Below, piece by piece: positions 10,791 through 51,100 of a DNA stretch of 64,000 bases. Position 1 is the stretch's first letter. Every line of letters begins with the position of its first letter. Under the pieces are notes generated by a model. It saw nothing but the letters and a program-made list of their open reading frames with translations. It ran no database searches and had not been told where the DNA came from. The translations under genes were made by a program, and so were the position numbers. This stretch comes from Trichosphaerium sp. ATCC 40318 (taxonomy: Eukaryota; Protista; Tubulinea), in NCBI GenBank assembly GCA_038496445.1, contig JALMLS010000120.1:52188-116187 (forward strand). The letters run 5' to 3'.

Positions 10791-11291
10791 AGAACAATAA
10801 GTTTGTTTTGCCATTACATATTATGGGATAAACTTTGTTGGAACAACAGACAAGTTTCCAACTATTAACGCAAAAAATAAAACAGTTTTGGAATGTTGAT
10901 ACTAAAATTAGTCCTGAGATATTTTTGTTCAGAGCAACAAAGTTGAGGCTTGTTTACAATATAATTCTGCACCATAAACTTGCTGACATGATACATACGA
11001 AACCCTTCACAAGTCAGAACTCATTGCCTAAAACAGTAGAAAACGCAAACTGGCAAAATTACAGTATCGTCCTTATTCACAGTATATGCTCGAGTGAAGG
11101 AGTAGAAGTTTACAGGAGTACCGCAGCATATCCTTTATCATGTCAAGAGACCTTGATGTGAACTATTTTATCCGGACTCCGTGAATAACCAGCTGTTTTG
11201 GGAAGAAAAATTATCGACTTAAATTGGCGTTAAGCCACTTACAATTGTGTTAGTTGTTACGCACAATTATCACGTCGTCGCTGTATTTTTC

Positions 11292-12644
11292 ATGGAAGAA
11301 ACGACTATTGCGTCAGAACCTCATTCTGAAACGAAAATTACAATTTCGGTTAAACAGCCTCAAATCATCATAACAGCGTTACCGAGCGATGTACAAAGGT
11401 TAATATGTACTCTGGACTCTGAAATATTCATGAAATACCACCTCCTATCCAAACAAGCGGCGATTAGAACTCACTTCAATAGCGCTCTTGAGAAGGACGG
11501 TTTATGGATATCTTGGTACCCAACAGGCGAAATAAGACAACACTGGCGTAGAGACGGTACTTGTAAGCGCTGGTACAAGAATGGGAACATACAATTCGAA
11601 CATTCCCAGCGAAACGGTAAATCCAACGGTATTTTCAAGTTATTCAGAGAAAGTGGAAGTCTCGCCATAGAGGTTGAAATGAAGGATGGTTTACAGGATG
11701 GTATGTTAAAAGAGTATTACGGAGACTTTCCAAGGAGGTTGGCAAGACCTTTGGGAAGATTAAACGAGAGAGAACAAGAAAAAACACCGGAAGATCCAAA
11801 CGGAAGACTCAGGTATAAGTTTACAATGAAGAATGGTGTGAAACACGGTTTGTATGAGGAGTTTACACGTAAAGGTAAAGTAAGTGCTATAGGTAATATG
11901 AAGGATGGTAAACAAGATGGTTTACGTATAGAGTATAGCGGTGATGTAAAGTATAGAGAAAGTATGTGGAAAGAAGGTAAAAAACATGGTTTTTATAGAC
12001 AATGGTTCAGAGATGGTTGTAGATGTCTTGAGTATCATAATATTGATGGTAAAAAACAAGGTGAGTCTAAGGAGTGGTTTAGGACAGGTCAGATTAAACG
12101 TCATTGTTTTATGAAGAATGGTTTTAAAGAAGGAAAATTTAAGGAATGGTTTGCTGATGGCAAGCTTAGAATTGAAGCTGTTTATTATAAGTCTAAAAGG
12201 CATGGTGAGTATAAAGAGTGGTATGAAAATGGACAATCTAAGGAAGAGAGTATGTACAAAGAAGGTAAATACGATGGAGAGTTGAAGCGGTGGCATAGTA
12301 ACGGACAAATGAGCACTCATTGTTTTAAAAAAAATGGAATAACTGATGGTTTATATAGACTTTGGTATAAAACAGGACAACCTCAGACTGAGTACACCAT
12401 TGGTAATGGTGTGAAACAAGGTTTATATAGGTCGTGGTACTCTAATGGTGTTCAAAACAAGATATGTACTATGAAGGATGGTCGTCAATGTGGTGAGTGT
12501 AAGACTTGGTATATGAGTGGACTTCTTTCTACACATTCTGTTGTGGAAGATGGTAAAGCAATTAAACCTCGTAAGACTTGGGATAGTAAAGGACAGCTTA
12601 CGTATAGTTCTATACTTGCCAATTTAAAGGGTGGTATATTCTAG
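11292..12644 (+). CDS. intronless MORN-variant repeat protein with F-box-like N-terminus
   Basis: Single ORF with ~24-aa repeats of type GKKHGxYKEWYENGQ. N-terminal ITALPSDVQRLICTLDSEIFMKYHLLSK is F-box-like. First ATG at 11292. Confidence 0.85.
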   Translation: MEETTIASEPHSETKITISVKQPQIIITALPSDVQRLICTLDSEIFMKYHLLSKQAAIRTHFNSALEKDGLWISWYPTGEIRQHWRRDGTCKRWYKNGNIQFEHSQRNGKSNGIFKLFRESGSLAIEVEMKDGLQDGMLKEYYGDFPRRLARPLGRLNEREQEKTPEDPNGRLRYKFTMKNGVKHGLYEEFTRKGKVSAIGNMKDGKQDGLRIEYSGDVKYRESMWKEGKKHGFYRQWFRDGCRCLEYHNIDGKKQGESKEWFRTGQIKRHCFMKNGFKEGKFKEWFADGKLRIEAVYYKSKRHGEYKEWYENGQSKEESMYKEGKYDGELKRWHSNGQMSTHCFKKNGITDGLYRLWYKTGQPQTEYTIGNGVKQGLYRSWYSNGVQNKICTMKDGRQCGECKTWYMSGLLSTHSVVEDGKAIKPRKTWDSKGQLTYSSILANLKGGIF

Positions 12645-15207: not shown

Positions 15208-17305
15208 GTTTTGAACAAGAAAATGTTAAGCAACACCTAAATTTAGGTCAGTGTTGATCAAAACACGCGAAACAGCTATCGCGCAACACAGTTATGGCTT
15301 TGGTCGCCACCAGAGATAAAATAACAGCTGTACTAAACAACAAACGGCATCAACTCGTCTCATGACCATCCACGTACGTTACAACTACTATCACGTATAG
15401 TGGTATGCTTCACGCTTTATCTAATTTGAGGATAAACAGGTATTGGTTTAAATACCTACTGGAGAACAAAAATAACCCCAGGACGCGAACTGATCAACCA
15501 TTAGAAATAATGCAAAGACTAAACCATCAAATCTCTCCATAGCCCTAAAACGGTACTGAACAACTCTGTTATGCTCAACATGACTCATAAATAATGTTCA
15601 GCGCGCTCCCAGCTTACACAGATTTGTTTCTCCTACAACTCACTATAGAAATAACTACAGGGCATACAGCGCGAAATCAAAGCAAACAGCGCCAATTTAG
15701 CACATTGGATACGTTTTTTAATAGCGTTCCAATTTTACAATCACAAACGAAGTAAAAGTAATTGTATACGCTACTGGATTATTGTGAGAGTTCATTGGAA
15801 CGAAATAACGTATATTCGATTGATCACTTTACAAATGACATGGAATGGAGCAACAGTTGTAGAAAAGGACTGCACTTATAACAAGTAGTACAACCACACC
15901 TCTGTGGGTCAAAAGAAAGTACGTAGCGCCAAGATAGTCAAGTACTCATTGTGTTTTGTCGTTTCGCATCTTTTTTTTTGACTCATTTTAGCGATTGATT
16001 TATCTTGGGCGTGTATTGAGCTGTTTTATGCGATTTCTATCACTAGATTCAACTCACCGAGGTTTGTAACGTTGTTACAGAGTTTTCATTTCAAACTAAA
16101 GAGTTCTTTGTTTAATAGACTCTAGGTAACCACTTCGTTTGTGTATTGAGCCTTTGCGCTGGGAAAGAGAACCGACAATGCTACAGAACAAACTGCAAGT
16201 TAACCTTTCGCTTGCATAGATGGATGATCAGGTCATGCAAGCCAAGACACAGAGGAATATTCACTTTCGGGCAGACTTTTGATAAATAATTTTACACCTG
16301 CTAGAAACATGTTTAATGGTCCAAATACGCACGCTGGTCGATGGTTATTGGGTTTATTCATACTATGCGCTATTTCTGTTACATTATTTATGACAAATCG
16401 TATTATTCATCCTACATGGACCCATACGCGCACAAGGCATGAGAAAAAACGACAGATACTATTTGCTTGTCTCTACAAAAAACTGCAATAGTACAGGGTT
16501 GAAATTTAGATTATTTTGGTCATTATCTCATATCTACAAGGACGAAGCAACTCCTCCTCATATCCCATACACCTACGATGCCTTCTATTATCAAATCCTT
16601 GACGAAGTTTGGAAGAAAGATGATTAACAAGCTCAGAAACAAGCAAACTCGGCAACGACAAGAAGAACCCACCGAAATAGCCGAAAAAGCTATTGATAGA
16701 CAATGCAGCGTGGAAAAACTTGGTTGCGTGGACACAGCGACAAATTCTGCTATTATTGGAGAATGTCTTATGAGTATTGCCAAATTTCATAAACAGGGTT
16801 TGGCCGGTCTAAATCTAAAGGCAGAAAATATCTTTACCTCCTCCGACTTTGATATTTTTTTGGATCCTCTGGCAACCGATTTAACGGGCAGGAAATCAGA
16901 TGATTTCTTCGACATTGGTAATATAACTATGCAGCTTGTTCTTGGATGCGACAATGCTTCAGATGAAACAAGAGGAACTGATATATTCGATAAAATGTTC
17001 GCTGACTTGACAATTCAAACACGATTTGAAGAGTTAGAAATGAACCCAAAAACTGATTCTGATCTTTTGGACTTTGTAGAAAAGTGCATCGATAAAGAAC
17101 ACCCACCGACATTAGATGAGCTATTGAGGCATCCTTTTATTAGACATAAGAGACACAACGAGTGCTACGATTTCGGAGATGCTGTCATACGCAGACGTTG
17201 AGTTACAACAAGTAACAGAGAAAAAAAATGTAAAACAAAAAACTAAAATGTAATTTATTAAACCCCAAAACCTTTGTACAACTTGTTTCGTTCCCATTAT
17301 CTTTC
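15208..17305 (+). repeat. copy A of a ~2.1 kb inverted segmental duplication (partner 37715-39803)
   Basis: Collinear reverse-complement identity from ttgaacaagaaaatgttaagcaacacc to gtacaacttgtttcgttcccattatctttc. A short extra match lies near 15021-15045 / 39869-39891. Confidence 0.95.
16578..17201 (+). CDS. protein-kinase-like (pseudokinase) C-lobe ORF, copy A
   Basis: IIGECLMSIAKFHKQGLAGLNLKAENIF resembles alphaE plus the catalytic loop but lacks HRD. Also DFFDIG and LLDFVEKCIDKEHPPTLDELLRHPFI. A putative N-lobe lies in another frame (16439-16627). Confidence 0.6.
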   Translation: MPSIIKSLTKFGRKMINKLRNKQTRQRQEEPTEIAEKAIDRQCSVEKLGCVDTATNSAIIGECLMSIAKFHKQGLAGLNLKAENIFTSSDFDIFLDPLATDLTGRKSDDFFDIGNITMQLVLGCDNASDETRGTDIFDKMFADLTIQTRFEELEMNPKTDSDLLDFVEKCIDKEHPPTLDELLRHPFIRHKRHNECYDFGDAVIRRR

Positions 17306-27159: not shown

Positions 27160-27336
27160 TGTAAACTACTAAACCTAAAAAAAATCCCTTTTGAAGTCTG
27201 AGTTTGAGATGCTGACGCAAGAGCACACACGAAAAATCCAAAAACCCAAAGAGACAAAGAGACAATAATATGTACATAAAGCTTTTTCTTGTTCTCTTTA
27301 TTTGTTCTTTCATTTTTTATGGCATTTATTTGTTAA

Positions 27337-29600
27337 TTACAAAGCATGAAGTGGAATGCCAGCATCATTGAACCTTGTTCTTTCAAGAACAGTTTTGATT
27401 CTGTTGAATTTTGCAAGAACATCATCTGCATCATTTATCCTTACTGTCATAAAATACCTCTTCTTGGGATCACTATAAGGGTCCATTGCAAACTTGAATT
27501 TCTCTATTACAAACTGTACAGCTCTTGCAACATCATTACCGCCTATTTTATTTGTCAGACAAAAAAAAGTAAGAAAGAAATAAGAAAGTTGTTGTTTCGA
27601 AGAAGCTTCTGCGGTTTATCACGTTTCTTTTTGTTTTTTCAAAATCGTACCAAAATAATCAGGGAAACAATTGGATAGAGGTGAGTGAGGAAGTGATTCC
27701 TTTAAAAATTCTGCATCAGCAAACAAAACAAACTTTGTTTGTTTTCGGAACCATGTTGAATTGCTTAACCTCTCAAACAGTCTCAAAGCAGAAAGTATAG
27801 GTGGTTGCTCTCCTGGTCTCTTTGGTATATAATCCGCCAATGACACATAAAAAACAAGCGAACAAACAGCAGTTTGGAACTGGTTTATTATCTTGCGGCT
27901 ACAATTAAGCCGTGTGCTAAAATCTATGAACCTAAGGCACTCTGTCAATGATCACATTCTTTCCTGGTTAGATATTTACTTACTTGTATCTTGTATGTTC
28001 ATCTATAGTACATTCAAACTCATCTAATAAACCACTAGTCTCTGGAGTACGTATGTAATCTTCCTCTGAAATTTTGAATTTCTTTCCACCGAGTCTGTGC
28101 AACTGGTTTAAGAAGCTACAACAGAAAGAAACATTAGAAAATCCATCAAATGTAGTACAGTATGTGTAATAATTAAGCGTCACCATTTTCAAGAAGTAGC
28201 AAGAGTGAAAAAAATAATGAGAAACAATAGAGTAGCACAAAGAACATGGTTGTTTCATAGACTCTTTTTTTTTTTTTTGGAAATTAAAGATACTTGTAAA
28301 TTCTTTCAAAAACCTTAACTTGGCGATCATAAAAATCTAACGTACTACTTTGCATTTCTTGGTAGTTTACGTGTAAGTTTAACACGCTCATATGCATTCT
28401 GTATAGCTTTTGATTTCCAAACACTTGACAAGTACTCAGCGAGTACAGGCGTAAGACCTGTTTTATCTAATGTATCTAGCATGTCTATATCACTAGGAAC
28501 CTATGGGAAACACATTAGTAAAAGTAGAAGCCAGTTAACGCTTCAATAAAGTGATATTCAGTAGAAAATTCTCTTTTCTTTTTCTTATTTTTGAAAAATA
28601 CATACTGCTTCATCACTCGCTTCAGGTGATCGTTTTGCTTCAGCTATCAAAATACGCAATGCAATAGCACATAAAATAAGTATTTTTCTTCTACACTCTT
28701 TCTGTTCTGCGCTTGGGACATCTGGGAAGTGGAAAAAAAATTCAAGTCGTTTTACTATTTATGTCAATCAGAAAAAACAAGTAAAAAATGAGAAACAGTT
28801 TTTCTCGTCTTTACAGTCACGTACATATGACATGTTTCCCTGAATTGTCTGCGCCTATATTCATTATATTATAATACTCATTCATTTCATCTCTAGAATG
28901 CCGTATATGAGCATCAATCCCATTGGAATTTGACCTTTCCCTTCGCCATATTTTTTGTAAACATCTATGTTGTTGTGACGTCCAAAGCACTTGCTTTGGT
29001 TTAAATTCGTAATCTAAGCACATTTTAGTTTTCTCTTGTGTGTATTAATGTATGTCAATGAAACTCAAGGTTGACAGGAGGCACGTACGCCAGTAATTTT
29101 GACCTAGTTTGTAGAATAATTTCATTTTGTTTTTTGTCTTAGCACGAACCTAAGGCACTTAGTCAGTTGCTCAAAATCGGTCTAGGTGATATCTACGTAC
29201 TGTATGGGTAGAGCATAGGTATCTAAGATGCGGGACGCTATCTATAATATTTTTATACTTGCGGCAAGTCAACGCAACGCAATTCAAGTCCTTTGGTCCC
29301 AAGTGTTTTAGTAATTGTAAAGATAGCTCTACAGGGCAATCTAGTCGTATTTTAGCGTGACAAGCGTCATACAAAAGCTTCATTGAAATTCACTGCAGAG
29401 GTAATAAAATACCCGCGTACCAACGAAATAACAGTGTTCCACTGTCTCTTTTGCTTTTTTAGAACTTTTAGATGAGGATCGAGAGCGTGGTTTAGATGAA
29501 GACCGCGAGCGCGATTTTGATGATGAGCGAGCGCGTGTAGAGACGAGTTTGCGAACGCCATGTACTAGGGGGTCGTATGTAGCTACAATATGTACCACGA
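27337..29600 (-). CDS. F-box fused to a divergent heterotrimeric G-protein alpha subunit (probable pseudo-GTPase); 5' end uncertain
   Basis: Arg/Ser-rich exon, then F-box YFVDCPVELSLQLLKHLGPKDLNCVALTCRKY. GT-AG introns join this in frame to GIDAHIR..IMNIGADNSGKH, helical domain VWKSKAIQNAYER, EEDYIRTPETSG, RFIDFSTR, LVFYVSLADY, ALRLFERLSNSTWF and GNDVARAVQFVIEKF. TAA at 27337-27339. Confidence 0.78.
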
Positions 29601-30189
29601 CGCTATAAACTGTTATTCAAGGGATAAATTCAATAGTGACAGCTGTGAGTAAGTTTTTTGTTACTTTTGCACAAAACCAAAAACACTGAATTTGTTATCA
29701 GTGAGGTTAAACCGTTACTGCGTGTTGTTTTGACGTCTTAAAAAATCATACAAGTAGGTAATAACAGAAATTGCCGATTGGTTTCTTTTAGCACGCATTG
29801 TACCTGTATAGCGCTTTTTGTAGCGCGTCATTGTCTTGTAGACGATTTAGAGTTCGCTGAAGCTCGTCTCGTTCCTGGAGCAATAAGCTTGGCTGAAAAT
29901 AACTTTACTAACCTCTTGTAGCTTGCTGAGTAACGATTCCATTGCTGACTGCTAATTTTGCAGATTTAAACTTCTGTTGCTTCCACTGCTCGTTGAGCGA
30001 TATTATGACGCCAGTGCTGATGAGATAAGGACTTATACCTAATCGTGCAACAAACAAAATGTGTATTTCTAATACTATGCGCTGCCGGCCAGGCTTAGGG
30101 TCCTTAGAATGCACAGCCGTATTACACCGTTCTGTGCACTATAGCGCTTAAAACTACTAACTTAAAAGAAAACGTTCTGGTTTGTTTAT

Positions 30190-33074
30190 TGATGGTCCTG
30201 GAAATACATTGGACCACTACTTTGATACACACAAATGATTAGTCTGTTTTTACAGGTTTTGCCGCTGCGCACGTGTTAAAATAAGTGAAAAAAAAAACCA
30301 CACGAAAAAACGCGACGTACCAAAGCAAGCGTACTCGATTTTCTTGTCAATCTCGAACCTCTCACGCTTTCCACCAAATAGAATCTTTTCGTAAACAAAA
30401 TTGATAGAGAATGAGTACAGCTGCTGTTGACCTTTTTGATAAAAACAATAAGTTAGAAGGCTACTATGACCAAAAGAAGAAGCTTAGCACTTACCAGGGT
30501 GTCGTTTGTTGTATTCTCTGCAAATATAATCTGGAAAAGTCTATAAGAGTGTCTGTTAGTTGTTGGAAATCATTGTAGATGTTCCGTACGAGTAGTAGAT
30601 GCTCAAATGAAGCTGCTCTGTCCTTGTAATTTTCGTAAAACTTGAACCATCTGTGATTTTTAAAAGCTTGCACGTGTGATGCGGGAGGATCCCAACCTAT
30701 ATCTTCTATTCGAGCATAATGATCCGCTTCCCAAGTATGCCTACTGATAGCTACAAAAGAGTTACACTAATCCAACACATTGTAAATAAGCGTACCTCCA
30801 TTTCGCCACAACTCTACTGCTGTACCATCCAACAGCTTACCTGGTACAACCATGTACCAATTGAATTTCGGAGGCCCGGGCGCAAACATACTCCATTGTT
30901 GATCAGTTCGCATCATCCACACAAACCAATGGCTATCAGTTCCAGGTGATAAACTTGGTGTCAAGTTAGTTAATTGGTAATGTTATCTTTTGGACGTACT
31001 TTGTGAAACCGATTGCCCTGAAGTTAATGATAAGAACTTGGTAAAGAGCAAACGCAACAATGGCGTATTTGAACATGAGTAAAGCGAAAGCCACTCCTTT
31101 CTTTCCCATATTACATCCCTTACGACATTTATGTTTTGCGTAAGATACATCGTTCTTTTTGTGGATTGTTATGGTTTTCCTATTTGTGAGAATGTGAAGT
31201 AACTCTAGGCAATATTTGAATGGTTTCTGAAGTGTATCTGAAAGCTTGGCTAGGAACCTAAACACGCGATCTTAATAAGAATGTACGTATTCAACAAAAA
31301 TGAGCTCACCAGCCTACGTAATGAAGAAGCGGAGACAATAATAGTAGTTCTACAAAGGCTTCGAAATCGTAAAGCACAGTTCCTGAAAAGAGTGTTAGAA
31401 GCATGGTCATTATAAATAAGTACCTTCTTTATCTAGAACCACTAACCAAGTTGTATTACGGATTGTAGGTAACTTTGGTGAAGTTTCAATGTCAAAAGCA
31501 GCCATCTTTCCTTTTTTTTGACGTAAATTTCAACCAGTAATAGATAGCGCAATACCTTTGAATTGTGTGCCGTCATCCTTTTTATCACTATCAACCCCAG
31601 GTTTACTTTCGTCCCTCAATGAGTGCTCCATGTTCTGTAATGATAATATAGATGTCTCTGGGAGAAGAAAGAAGTGTTTAAACGCGAAACCAACATAACT
31701 GCCTAACCAAGATGTCTAGGTTGCTTTAACAAAAAGTTGAACATCTTTGTCGTACCTCGCTATAGAATACTTTAGCATTGGATCTCTCCTGTGAGCGGAT
31801 GTAAGGAAATATGAAGTCATCCCATATCATAGGCGGCATAAAACCGAGCAGAGCAGCCTGAGGTATCAATCCAAAAAGGCCTATTAAAGAGTTACAAAAC
31901 TTGCATAAAACAAGGCTCACGTGCCTAATCTCATAGCCGCAAAAAGCCCAGCATGCATCCCCATAGTTCCCAGCGTTCCAAATAATCTGCTCCATTGCGT
32001 ATACACTGGAGATACCCAAAAAAAGGGTCCCCAGAATTCCCTTAAATATACACTAAGACAATGATGTAAAAGTGTTTTACGCACCACCAAACAACAAGCT
32101 TCGTCATAATTATGCAAACAAACTCAAATCTTCGCAGTACTCTACCAAACAAAGTAGAGAAATAGTCCATATTAAGAGCGTAGTAAGTTGCAGTTCCTAC
32201 CGGTTAGGTTAGTCATATAATTACTACAAACGCTACACTAGCTTTACCTGTGACTTTCCACTCTGGTTCTGTTTTATGATACGTTGACATGATGTATATC
32301 AAGGCATACTGCACTAAAAGGGCTATGCTGGCTATAGACACGTGAATAGGTGCCCTGCAAACTCTAGTTAAAAAAGAATATCAGTCGTAAAATGTGTCTT
32401 ACTTTTTCGTTTGTGTTGGTCTTCCCTCTCGCTCTACCTTAATTGCAGCATCCACAGACCAATACTGTTCGAGTTAGTGAGTACATGTAGAAAAATAAGC
32501 GAGTACGTACTTCACCCAAAGGCAAGAACATTATCCAAAATAATGTCATCCGATACATGACATCTCCACCGTGACAAACAAACAAGTTTATCTCGTGCAA
32601 GCTTGATACCATCCACCATGTCATAAAAGACGAGAAAGTAGTATGATAACCAACGAGCATACAAACAGCAAAGATCGCATGACACAAAAATATAGCTGCT
32701 TGCCCGTATACGCCTAGATTTAATAAAATTAGGCGAACTATGCCTTTTCGAAAAAGAAACACGTGGGCATTATTTGTAAATTGTTTCGTACTGCCATTGA
32801 TGTGATGAAACACTACAAACAGGTCGCTGGTATGATGTTCCATCATTTCAAAGTGTCTAACAACGCCTTGATCAGAGTAATGCGCCATTAAGTCCTCACT
32901 TCTGTTCCAGAGGTCCCACAGTGTACATAGAGCAACGCAGACGCGCATTAGAGCAAGAGAGCGTTTATCGAAGCCAAACATCATCTTAAATTTGCTGTAA
33001 AGCAATACCCACCATCCTTGAGGCGTTTTAGGCAGCTTTTGGCTGAAAGTTTTATTGCTGTGGCCCAAATTCAT
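30190..33074 (-). CDS. HTTM-domain multi-pass membrane protein (intron-containing)
   Basis: FGFDKRSLALMRV..DLWNRSEDLMAHYSDQGV, HGGDVMYRMTLFWIMFLPLG, GMHAGLFAAMRLG..F, DQQWSMFAPGPP and HRWFKF match bacterial HTTM-protein motifs. 3' end approximate. Confidence 0.8.
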
Positions 33075-37714: not shown

Positions 37715-39803
37715 GAAAGATAATGGGAACGAAACAAGTTGTACAAAGGTTTGGGGTTTAATAAATTACATTTTAGTTTTCTGTTTTACATTTTTTTTTC
37801 TCGTTTCTGTTACTTGCTGTAACTCAACGTCTGCGTATGACGGCATCTCCGAAATCGTAACATTCGTTGTGTCTCTTATGTCTAATAAAAGGATGCCTCA
37901 ATAGCTCATCTAATGTCGGTGGGTGTTCTTTATCGATGCACTTTTCTACAAAGTCCAAAAGATCAGAATCGGTTTTTGGGTTCATTTCTAACTCTTCAAA
38001 TCGTGTTTGAATTGTCAAGTCAGAGAACATTTTATCGAATATATCAGTTCCTCTTGTTTCATCTGAAGCATTGTCGCATCCAAGAACAAGCTGCATAGTT
38101 ATATTACCAATGTCGAAGAAATCATCTGATTTCCTTCCCGTTAAATCGGTTGCCAGAGGATCCAAAAAAATATCAAAGTCGGAGGAGGTAAAGATATTTT
38201 CTGCCTTTAGATTTAGACCGGCCAAACCCTGTTTATGAAATTTGGCAATACTCATAAGACATTCTCCAATAATAGCAGAATTTGTCGCTGTGTCCACGCA
38301 ACCAAGTTTTTCCACGCTGCATTGTCTATCAATAGCTTTTTCGGCTATTTCGGTGGGTTCTTCTTGTCGTTGCTGAGTTTGCTTGTTTCTGAGCTTGTTA
38401 ATCATCTTTCTTCCAAACTTCGTCAAGGATTTGATAATAGAAGGCATCGTAGGTTTCTAGGGTATGAGGAGGTGTTGCTTCGTCCTTTTAGATATGAGAT
38501 AATGACCAAAATAACCTAAATTTCAACCCTGTACTATTGCAGTTTTTTGTAGAGACGAGCAAATAGTATCTATCGTTTTTTCTCATGCCTTACGCGCGTA
38601 TGGGCCATGTAGGATGAATAATACGATTTGTCATAAATAATGTAACAGGAATAGCGCATAGTATGAATAAACCCAATAAACATCGACCAACGTGCGTATT
38701 TGGACCATTAAACATGTTTCTAGCAGGTTTAAAATTATTTAACAAAAAGTCAGCCCGAAAATGAATATTCCTCTGTGTCTTGGCTTGCATGACCTGATCA
38801 TCCAGCTATGCAAGCGAAAGGTTGAGTTGCAGTTTATTCTGTAGCATTGTCGGTTCTCCGTGCAGTGTTAAGGCTCAATACGCAAACAAAGTGGTTACCT
38901 AGAGTCTATTAAACACAGAAACTCCATAGTCGAAATGAAAACTCTGTAACAACATTACAAACCTCGGTGAGTTGAATCTAGTGATAGAAATCGCATAAAA
39001 CAGCTCAATACACACCCAAGATAAATCGCTAAACTGAGTCAAAAAAGATGCGAAACGACAAAACACAATGAGTACTTGACTATCTTGGTGCTACGTACTT
39101 TCTTTTGACCCATAGAGGTGTGCTTGTACTACTTGTTATAAGTGTAGTCCTTTTCTGCCACTGGTGCTCCATTCCATGTCATTTGTAAAGTGATCAATCG
39201 AATATACGTTATTTCGTTCCAATGAACTCTCTCAATAATCCAGTAGCGTATACAATTACTTTTACTTCGTTTGTGATTGTAAAATTGGAACGCTATTAAA
39301 AAACGTATCCAATGTGCTAAATTGGCGCTGTTTGCTTTGGTTTCGCGTCGTATGCCCTGTAGTAATTTTTAGACAAACGAATCAACTTATTTAAAGTGGG
39401 AGCGCTCTGAACATTGTTTATGAGTCATATTGAACATAATAGAGTTGTTCAGTACCGTTTTAGGGCTATGGAGAGATTTGATGGTTTAGTTTCTTTTTGC
39501 TCTATTTCTAATGGTTGATCAGTTCGCGTCCTGGGGTTATTTTTGTTCTCCAGTAGGTATTTAAACCAATACCTGTTTATCCTCAAATTAGATTAAGCGC
39601 AAAGCTTACCACTATATGTGGTAGTAGTTGTAACGTACGTGGATGGTCATGAGACGAGTTGATGCCGTTTGTTGTTTAGAACAGCTGGTATTTTATCTCT
39701 GGTGGCGACAAAAGCCATAATTGTGTTGTACAATAGCTGTTTCGCGTGTTTTGATCAACACTGACCTAAATTTAGGTGTTGCTTAACATTTTCTTGTTCA
39801 AAA
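37715..39803 (-). repeat. copy B of the ~2.1 kb inverted segmental duplication
   Basis: Reverse complement of 15208-17305 with scattered substitutions and small indels. Confidence 0.95.
37824..38447 (-). CDS. protein-kinase-like (pseudokinase) C-lobe ORF, copy B
   Basis: 207 aa, differing from copy A at two residues (R/Q and A/S). Confidence 0.55.
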   Translation of the reverse strand: MPSIIKSLTKFGRKMINKLRNKQTQQRQEEPTEIAEKAIDRQCSVEKLGCVDTATNSAIIGECLMSIAKFHKQGLAGLNLKAENIFTSSDFDIFLDPLATDLTGRKSDDFFDIGNITMQLVLGCDNASDETRGTDIFDKMFSDLTIQTRFEELEMNPKTDSDLLDFVEKCIDKEHPPTLDELLRHPFIRHKRHNECYDFGDAVIRRR

Positions 39804-48100: not shown

Positions 48101-51100
48101 TACGCATGGTACGGGCCAATTACACATGATTCTTACATTGTTAACTTGTGCACAAGGCCATTACTTCATTAGAAGTAGTTATGAAGGTGGAAAAATCAAA
48201 GGAAGCGAAACAAGCCTTTTTGAGATCAACTGTCGTGCGACTCACGCTACCATACCTTGTACTTGGCTTATCGCTTTTCTCGCATGAATTGTTATTCTCT
48301 TTTGGGTTCGTTACACTTTATATTTATTTATCAGGTCTCATTCCGTATGTAGAGAAGATCTGTTGCAGCTTGTATCAGAGCTAGCTACACTTGTGAGCAC
48401 TTTTATTGGTCCTGAACAAATTGGCGGTGAAGTAGACGCAGCGACATCGTGGCTTTATGACTTTGCTGATTCATTGGCGTATCTTAGCGGAAAAATCGCT
48501 TTAGGGTTTGTATTAGGAGAAAAAAGTGAGTCTCCTTCTCCCAAAGAAGAAGAACTTCTGCGCTCAAAAGTATGCTATTTTATTATTTGCTACCAGCTAA
48601 GGAACGACTAGATAATGCGTGGTGGTATATTAGAGCAACCACGTCTTAATGGAGATGAAGTGCTGTTTGTTAAGCAGTTTTCTGAAGGGAGCGATGAAAT
48701 CAAGCCTCTCGAAGAATGGCTGAATAAAGCAGCAGCTATGAAGCTACCACTGGCTTCAGAAGAAGCCAAAAACTGGGTTTCCAAAGCTGTGAGACAATCT
48801 GTACTAGCGTTATTGTATCACCACAACTTGCTATCTCCGATGGTTGAGCATGCCGGCAAAGTCAATGAAACTGCTTTGCAGTGGCTTGGTGCGTTTTATT
48901 TCAAGTTTACTCAAATTCTTATCCTTTTTGTTAGTTCCTGTTTGGAAGTCGGTGTTCCAACGCATCGGCACACATGTCATTCGTCTTAGACACACGAAAC
49001 TTGGCGCTCAAGATGAAGAAGGAGCTGCATATTCGAATCTATGTGGAAGAATCATAAGTGATGCTAAATTTATGATGCGATTCCCACCAGGTATGATAGC
49101 TAATAGAACCTTCTTTTCCTGGTTAACTTTTTTGGATAGTTTGCGAAGAACCCCAAAAGGATAAGCTCCTGGAATCTGAGTATTCGCAGTTCCTGCTTAC
49201 CTTTGTTATTTCTGTGGATGTCAGTAACGTATGATAATAACATTTTTCTTGTTACACAGAGATTAAAGGTTTGTAGGATGTTTTACTAAAATGGGTGACA
49301 CAAAGGACAAGTAAAGTCACCACTAGATTGACGGGTTTATCAATGTTTGCTAAACTGATGACTCTTTGGAAAACACCAACTGTTCTTGAACATGTACGTC
49401 ACCATGTATACAAGCTTTGATAACAGTATGTTGTAGGTATTAAAGAACTTTGCCGGGTGCTTCAAGAACGAACATTATCTCGCTAAATGCGAAGGTGCAC
49501 CATCCAAGATACTTGAAGATACACGTTTAGCATGGCGTCAACTATACATTGCCATATCTAAGCAGCTAAAAGTACGTCTAACACAATAACAAACCGAATT
49601 TTTTTATATCGCTGACATTCTACAAAAAAGGTGCAAACTAATCTCGATTACTTGCTCGTACTTGTCAAGTGTTGGGCAGTGCGCATAGCAGAGGCTGAAG
49701 ATGTTTCCTTTTTCAATAGAGTTGGCATCTTTGATCTACTCCAAAAAGTGCTTGTTCAGTTTCAAGAACAGTCTAAACTAGCTACATCTGGTACTGTTTA
49801 CAGATTTTCCAGAGGTGATTTGATAAGAAGCAATAATGAAGAGAAAAAATCATGCTACAGCGCAGCAGTCAAAGTTTTCAGATTATTGGCAACACAAGTT
49901 GCCAAAACAACTTTTGCTTCTTCTCTTCGCTTTGATAAGACAATGTTTGACTTGCTATTATCTGAAATGAACAGAAGTTTACCTGGAATGATGTATACAG
50001 CTCCTTTGTTTAAAGAAACATCAGATTGTCAGCAACTTTTGAGTAGAACTCATAGATTCTATGCTAACTACCCCGGATTAGCCATTTACAATGTAAGTAT
50101 CCTTTGGTATTTTAGCAGTTGTTAACACATGTAGGTCATCTCCTCGGCTACAGATGATAACCCTATACCAACAGATGAGACGTTCACTGTCTCTTTGTGG
50201 GTTTATCATACAGACTCTGACACATCTTATGACAAGTGTATATTCTTCCGTGGTGTTGCTGACAACTACTGTGCACTTACTATAAATACTTCAAGCTTGT
50301 TGTTGTTTACCCACTTATCGGACAATGGCGATACTCAAAAGATCCAGTCAAGGGTACGCCGTTGAGAGTCAGTTACTAAACAAACCTCATGTCTAACATT
50401 GTGCCGCAGTCTGTTATTGGGTTGAACAAGTGGACACACATTGCATGTACTGTCAATGATAAGGTCATGACAATGTATGTTGATGGCATTCAAGAACGTA
50501 CCCTCACAACGAAAGAAAAAGCAAAGGTTCGAAATACTCTTCTTCTATCTTCTCTCCTTACACCTCAAAAGGTTATTTCAGCAGCGCACCCATTTTACAT
50601 TGGTAAAATGAGAAAAGCTGTAATGAGCAAATGGTCACTTGGTATGAACGGCATGCTCAACGATATGAGATACATGACACGGTTAGCATGTTTTGACGGT
50701 GTCAAATACTTATTTTGTTGTAGGTCCATATCTGGTGATGAAGTCGCACTCTTATACAAGGGTGGTCCGTGTATTGAGCGGGCTGACGATTATTGTTATC
50801 AATTAGTGTCTGTATTGAAAGCTGTATCGAATACGGATATAGGAAAAGCTGAACTTGTCTCTGAGGCTGCTGTATCACTCATTCTGAAGACAATTGATGC
50901 AGGCACCTTTAGAGGTTCGTTTGATCCCTCAGCATTAAATTTTTAACTTGTTGTTTTATAGTGTGTTCTGTGGCGTACAAATTACTCCAGACCATTCTAC
51001 CTAACTTCAAACCTACCAAAAGTTTGACAGCAGAGCGAGTAGTAAAGACACTAGTCAACAGTGCTATTCATACTCTTAATGCTGATAAGCACAGAGGAAG

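Follow-up and report, generated by a model that had tools for sequence, protein, structure and literature searches.

A 64,000-nucleotide (nt) window of the genome of the amoeba Trichosphaerium sp. ATCC 40318 (contig JALMLS010000120.1, positions 52,188 to 116,187) contains a minus-strand gene that combines, in one reading frame, an F-box and a G-alpha subunit whose nucleotide-binding motifs are all degenerate. Judged from its sequence, this fused architecture is very probably real. The best explanation overall, favoured at somewhat better than even confidence, is an intact spliced gene encoding an F-box followed by a pseudo-G-alpha, which would act as a recognition module of a Skp1-Cullin-1-F-box (SCF) ubiquitin ligase. 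Fusions of a cullin adaptor to small GTPases are already known; in the literature and databases searched, none was found on record for a heterotrimeric G-alpha.

The gene model, rebuilt from a six-frame translation, extends from 29383 to 27337 and comprises eight exons, seven introns and 447 open codons (Table 1). Internal stops are absent from the fusion frame, while the alternative frames of the same eight exons contain 33 and 44; at the base composition of this DNA the chance of 447 stop-free codons is about 4e-14. The window as a whole is low-GC eukaryotic DNA (approximately 38% GC). All seven introns are of the GT..AG type, with lengths of 51 to 230 nt, and their donors are GTACG in five cases, GTAAGT in one and GTATGT in one. 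The string GTACG occurs six times on the minus strand of the gene region: the five occurrences in the coding part are exactly the modelled donors, and the sixth is in the leader. The introns match in style an intron of the neighbouring upstream gene that is confirmed by RNA (30320-30265, GTACGT..CAG, 56 nt). Because retention of any of the seven introns brings in an in-frame stop, the fusion depends on splicing; the exons are modelled as parts of what would be one mRNA. The first-pass annotation of this DNA had described an F-box exon joined to the N-terminus of a G-alpha through two canonical introns with the frame preserved. This description holds, and the junctions that it quoted (STHT/VRAK and NYWQ/KTKMCLDY) are correct. 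The open frame, the splice signals and the matches to both domains likewise back its one-frame architecture of an F-box and a complete, motif-dead G-alpha.

Domain and database searches were run on each exon separately. Residues 14-52 of exon 1 correspond to the Pfam F-box family PF00646 (E 1.6e-7; 31.4 bits against a curated cut-off of 20.5), and the exon also matches the F-box-like family PF12937 (E 1.2e-6) and can be aligned to the F-box of FBXW7 from Skp1 complexes. The protein begins with MKLLYD. Its N-terminal extension consists of the F-box and a 20-residue basic linker encoded by exon 2; the linker has no Pfam match, and no other domain was found in the extension by Pfam.

The G-alpha part comprises about 340 residues, and its N-terminal helix begins around residue 100, behind the F-box. 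Exon 7 carries the strongest match to the Pfam G-alpha family PF00503 (profile positions 194-279, E 2.8e-9, 37 bits), accompanied by weak collinear matches of exon 5 (positions 104-141, E 0.048, 13.2 bits) and exon 8 (positions 283-332, E 0.12, 11.9 bits). No exon singly reaches the family cut-off of 48.8 bits; the sum over exons, a rough figure, is about 62 bits. Membership in PF00503 is indicated exon by exon, with matches in the Ras-like domain and with the helical-domain exon 5 between G1 and G2. A local G-alpha profile was made from eight canonical G-alphas that a database search had retrieved, and the exons fall on it in sequence: exon 3 at profile positions 11-50, exon 5 at 117-146, exon 6 at 157-189 (13.3 bits), exon 7 at 207-292 (64.9 bits) and exon 8 at 294-350. 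This spacing suits a full-length G-alpha, save for approximately 17-20 residues that are absent after the P-loop. Among solved structures, exon 7 matches 138 distinct G-alpha chain sequences (E down to 1.9e-7). The Ras-like and helical domains read earlier from the sequence are therefore both present, the helical domain being some 17-20 residues short and exon 5 being placed in it by the profiles. Since an N-terminal helix, a shortened helical domain and a C-terminal helix are all found, the protein is not a 'mini' G-alpha.

To read the five nucleotide-binding motifs, the sequence was aligned with G-alpha-i chains of solved structure and with one canonical G-alpha, and the alignments confirm that every one of them is degenerate, as the first-pass annotation had stated. 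At G1, canonical GAGESGKS is replaced by GADNSGKH, which retains the lysine and has a histidine in place of the serine or threonine that binds Mg. At G2, RTRVKTTG has become RT-PETSG, with loss of the arginine finger and retention of the threonine. At G3, DVGGQ reads DFSTR, so that the glycine is lost and the catalytic glutamine is an arginine. At G4, NKKD reads ADAE and the guanine-specificity residues are lost, and at G5, TCATD reads TVRIN (TVRIND). The switch II contact residues are kept in part (tryptophan to isoleucine; Lys-Lys to Arg-Lys). In the exon 7 region, 9 of the 11 positions that are near-invariant among 62 database relatives are conserved; together with the lost motifs, this suggests that the fold was kept while the nucleotide site was given up, which makes the protein a pseudo-GTPase by sequence. 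Because the residues for Mg, guanine and the gamma-phosphate and both catalytic residues are lost, the protein is most likely a pseudo-GTPase that would neither bind nor hydrolyse GTP. An N-terminal lipidation site, also reported missing at first reading, is indeed lacking: the position for myristoylation or palmitoylation is absent because the G-alpha part is internal, behind the F-box.

The P-loop GADNSGK (28838-28858, exon 3) is letter-identical to that of engineered mini-G proteins, in which the P-loop was made stiffer by the changes G49D and E50N, modelled on Arl2 (PMC5181381). This identity is the reason why the only solved-structure match of exon 3, obtained with phmmer over the stretch from N-terminal helix to P-loop, is a miniGq chain. 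The agreement in two residues may well be due to chance.

A phmmer search of 1.84 billion representative proteins with exon 7 returned 62 matches, all of them G-alphas, the best at 57 bits. Identity to exon 7 is 29-43% for matches that span most of the exon, and a fragment of 93 residues is 53% identical across half of the exon. None of the 62 relatives has an F-box, and a look-alike search of the Atlas returned 'G-alpha' only. Among the nearest relatives of exon 7 are four degenerate G-alphas (P0003, P0024, P0029 and P0031) that lack the G3 and G4 motifs. Dead G-alphas are thus not unique to this genome and may form a wider, little-described group. These four proteins are 37-42% identical to exon 7 and differ from the fusion gene in having no F-box. 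P0003 is a protein of 637 residues with a PigL_N-type N-terminal domain, and P0031 (locus L001) comes from a Joint Genome Institute (JGI) environmental contig of 1258 nt that is cut at its 5' end; its P-loop region is degenerate too. Within the window, tblastn of every exon gave as sole paralogue signal a weak F-box match at 2470-2595. A description of an F-box/G-alpha fusion was not found in the literature searched, and an earlier mention in the key survey of G-alpha architectures, Anantharaman et al. 2011 (Gene 475:63), is possible. The first-pass annotation had named no characterised example, and none was encountered in that literature or among the 62 nearest relatives.

Translation most likely starts at the ATG at 29383, because an in-frame TGA (29392-29390) is located just 5' of it. 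Transcript data come from one low-depth run (X1), kept as contigs and labelled as RNA by guess; one of its contigs shows the upstream gene in spliced form, so the run holds RNA of this organism. Since the upstream-gene contig stops at 30180, shortly after an AATAAA, the 165-nt piece at 29477-29641 belongs to a separate transcribed unit, and it is most simply taken as the leader of the F-box gene.

Several observations weigh against the favoured explanation. No X1 contig falls on any coding exon or spans the F-box/G-alpha junction. The G-alpha matches of exons 3, 5, 6 and 8 are weak individually, and no G-alpha similarity of exon 4 is detectable by Pfam or the local profile. The exon 7 search found neither the protein itself nor a close orthologue among the 1.84 billion representative proteins. 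An upstream ATG at 29561, the sole one in the probable leader, complicates the assignment of the start. The unspanned junction would be in line with two separate products. One would be a 70-residue F-box peptide, made when exon 1 is read on as far as the stop at 29171, and the other a stand-alone pseudo-G-alpha starting from an ATG at 29023, produced by alternative splicing or from a promoter within the gene. The open frames for both are present, and the internal ATG, located in exon 3, precedes the N-terminal helix of the G-alpha. However, only 148 nt lie between the stop and this ATG, introns 1 and 2 have the consensus donor GTACGT, a TGAC motif resembling a branch site and an acceptor given as YAG, and these introns keep the frame through a 20-codon exon. 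Moreover, a 70-residue F-box without a target-binding part would be unusual. Two products are thus improbable, whether made by the one route or the other.

The absence of the coding exons from the X1 contigs and the failure to find an orthologue with exon 7 also bear on the question of whether the locus might be a gene copy that is silent or died recently, its motifs having degenerated as the locus decayed; the loss of all five nucleotide motifs would fit such a copy. Several features speak against decay. The 447 codons are free of stops and frameshifts and all splice sites (14/14) are canonical despite the divergence of the sequence, the losses are confined to ligand-binding positions and those of the structural core are kept, the score of the F-box remains higher than the curated cut-off, and the leader region is present in run X1. 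A dead copy is therefore rated a shade less probable even than two products. The combination of strong divergence in exon 7 (at most 43% identity) with an unbroken frame instead argues for long maintenance of the gene under selection.

The frame that opens at the upstream ATG at 29561 may act as an upstream open reading frame through which translation is controlled. It would stop at a TGA formed by removal of the doubtful leader intron (29420-29393). This 28-nt candidate is far shorter than the RNA-confirmed intron of 56 nt, and its use brings a TGA into the F-box frame. The leader at 29477-29641 has no Pfam domain and may be untranslated, and one of its frames is an arginine/serine-rich low-complexity run. 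Three upstream frames were considered as parts of the protein and rejected: short coiled-coil frames at 29942-29788, the frame from ATG 29561 and the arginine/serine-rich frame. They have no Pfam domain, and any of them would run into the TGA at 29392-29390 on entering the F-box frame. An intron of 43 nt ending at a weak AAG acceptor, which would join an upstream frame, is feasible on paper and unlikely.

Table 1. Coordinates of the F-box/G-alpha gene and its flanking elements in the window.
Feature	Position	Strand	Description
Probable 5' leader	29477-29641	minus (assumed; the contig gives no strand)	Identical to a 165-nt contig of run X1
Candidate leader intron, doubtful	29393-29420	minus	28 nt, GTACGC..CAG; sixth GTACG of the gene region
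Exon 1	29201-29383	minus	Start codon and F-box, 61 codons; Pfam matches
Intron 1	29150-29200	minus	51 nt, GTACGT..TTAG, phase 0; read-through stops after 9 codons
Exon 2	29089-29149	minus	Basic linker, 20 codons; same frame open
Intron 2	29035-29088	minus	54 nt, GTACGT..CAAG, phase 1; read-through runs into a stop
Exon 3	28825-29034	minus	G-alpha N-terminal helix and degenerate P-loop (G1); local profile, miniGq match
Exon 4	28606-28721	minus	Start of helical domain, shortened and diverged past recognition; placed by open frame and position
Exon 5	28346-28500	minus	Helical domain; weak Pfam match and local profile
Exon 6	27984-28115	minus	Linker 2 and switch I (G2); local profile and alignment
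Exon 7	27651-27931	minus	Strand beta-3 to helix alpha-G, with G3 and G4; strongest G-alpha match
Exon 8	27337-27542	minus	G5, helix alpha-5 and C-terminus; coding to 27340, TAA at 27339-27337
AATAAA, likely poly(A) signal	27325-27330	minus	7 nt past the stop codon

Several known proteins offer points of comparison. ARF and G-alpha are sister families of GTPases. RhoBTB proteins combine a partly non-canonical GTPase domain with a BTB domain for Cullin-3, the BTB domain being C-terminal to the GTPase. The amoeba protein has instead an N-terminal F-box, for Cullin-1; no exon has a BTB match in Pfam, and the protein ends with the G-alpha C-terminus. Plant XLGs and mammalian XL-alpha-s are G-alphas with N-terminal extensions that are not F-boxes, and they still work in G-protein signalling together with G-beta-gamma; the nucleotide motifs of plant XLGs are non-canonical. 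In the amoeba protein, by contrast, none of the five motifs is intact and the extension serves as a motif for docking to a ligase, composed of an F-box and a basic linker in place of the cysteine-rich region and nuclear localisation signal of an XLG-type N-terminus.

Closer in function are F-box proteins with a GTPase domain. Human FBXO4 (Fbx4) has an F-box followed by an atypical GTPase domain that has no nucleotide role in signalling and forms the substrate-binding module for TRF1 (PMC7086354). With its combination of an F-box and a domain of GTPase fold, it is the closest functional model for the amoeba protein. The likeness is drawn from function: the FBXO4 domain is of small-GTPase type and lacks both the helical domain and the N- and C-terminal helices of G-alpha. 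[quoted passage not shown] Like the amoeba protein, it is a lineage-restricted protist protein with an F-box and a C-terminal GTPase domain, but this domain is Ras-like rather than G-alpha and was treated as functional by its authors, and the FYVE domain is additional. Fusions of ARF-family GTPases to F-box or BTB domains are recurrent and lineage-specific (PMC8358228). They likewise represent the recruitment of a GTPase domain into a ubiquitin-ligase adaptor, and the amoeba P-loop GADNSGK has the Arl2-type Asp-Asn pair; the ARF/ARL domains measure approximately 180 residues, as opposed to the G-alpha of about 340 residues with a helical domain in the amoeba gene.

Elsewhere in the window, two long single-exon frames on the minus strand encode leucine-rich repeats (LRRs) of the ribonuclease inhibitor (RNI) type. 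The frame at 18718-19980 matches LRR_6 (E 1.6e-41) and has a weak F-box-like head (F-box_4, E 0.0087), and the frame at 22007-23242 matches LRR_6 with E 5.4e-24. By their sequences, both are further F-box or LRR adaptor genes beside the fusion gene. Two inverted frames of 207 residues, which lie about 21 kb apart (16578-17201, plus strand; 37824-38447, minus strand), differ in two residues and look like a recent inverted segmental duplication; their similarity to the C-lobe of protein kinases is weak (E 2.4e-4). The upstream gene (30180-30673, minus strand) has one intron at 30320-30265, seen in the spliced X1 contig, and probably another at 30490-30433, suggested by the loose end of that contig. 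Its probable TGA stop (30364-30362) precedes the last intron, which would therefore lie in the 3' untranslated region, and the contig end at 30180 is 5 nt past the AATAAA. Two exons of this gene have no Pfam match, and its assignment as an HTTM-type protein was dropped for want of support from Pfam. A 465-residue single-exon frame at 11247-12644 (plus strand) consists of MORN_2 repeats (E 2.1e-28). An exon at 50389-50946 (plus strand) matches Laminin_G_3, a concanavalin-like lectin domain (E 1.1e-6), and probably belongs to a large gene of many exons that covers approximately 46.8-51 kb.

By analogy with FBXO4, TbFRP, RhoBTB and the ARF-family fusions, chances are about even that the fusion protein acts as an SCF substrate receptor. 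Its F-box would dock onto Skp1 within a Skp1-Cullin-1 ligase. The fold of the dead G-alpha would serve as a fixed protein-binding module that delivers a partner for ubiquitination. The predicted partner is probably one of the usual recognisers of G-alpha, namely G-beta-gamma, a receptor or a regulator of G-protein signalling (RGS)-type protein; because the switch II contacts are only partly kept, the sequence does not tell which. The proposal of the first-pass annotation, an SCF adaptor or decoy aimed at G-protein-coupled receptors (GPCRs), G-beta-gamma, RGS proteins or effectors, is plausible on the same analogy, and the idea that pathogen effectors are targets is purely speculative.

The protein could also be made and use its F-box for something other than the delivery of substrates, such as its own turnover, a non-degradative decoy function towards G-beta-gamma or receptors, or a tether to Skp1. 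The F-box of TbFRP was tied by its authors to the fast turnover of TbFRP itself (PMC3593210), and the N- and C-terminal helices of the amoeba G-alpha part are kept in length; both points favour such a role. In characterised F-box proteins, on the other hand, the C-terminal domain usually binds a substrate, FBXO4 being an example. The present evidence does not separate self-turnover or a decoy from the adaptor model, and such a role is considered possible, at clearly lower probability than that of a substrate receptor. A more specific form of the substrate-receptor model, in which the dead G-alpha is locked in a state resembling the nucleotide-free or GDP-type form and hands activated receptors or free G-beta-gamma to the SCF ligase, is doubtful. 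If true, it would make the protein a natural counterpart of the engineered mini-G proteins, with which it has the GADNSGK P-loop in common, and would reveal a ubiquitin-based route of desensitisation in G-protein signalling.

A naturally nucleotide-dead, full-length G-alpha could show which surfaces of G-alpha work without the switch. If the fusion protein is made and binds Skp1, the G-alpha fold would prove to be reusable in a ubiquitin ligase as a recognition module that works independently of nucleotide, and the gene would provide a handle on the turnover of G-protein signalling components in amoebae.

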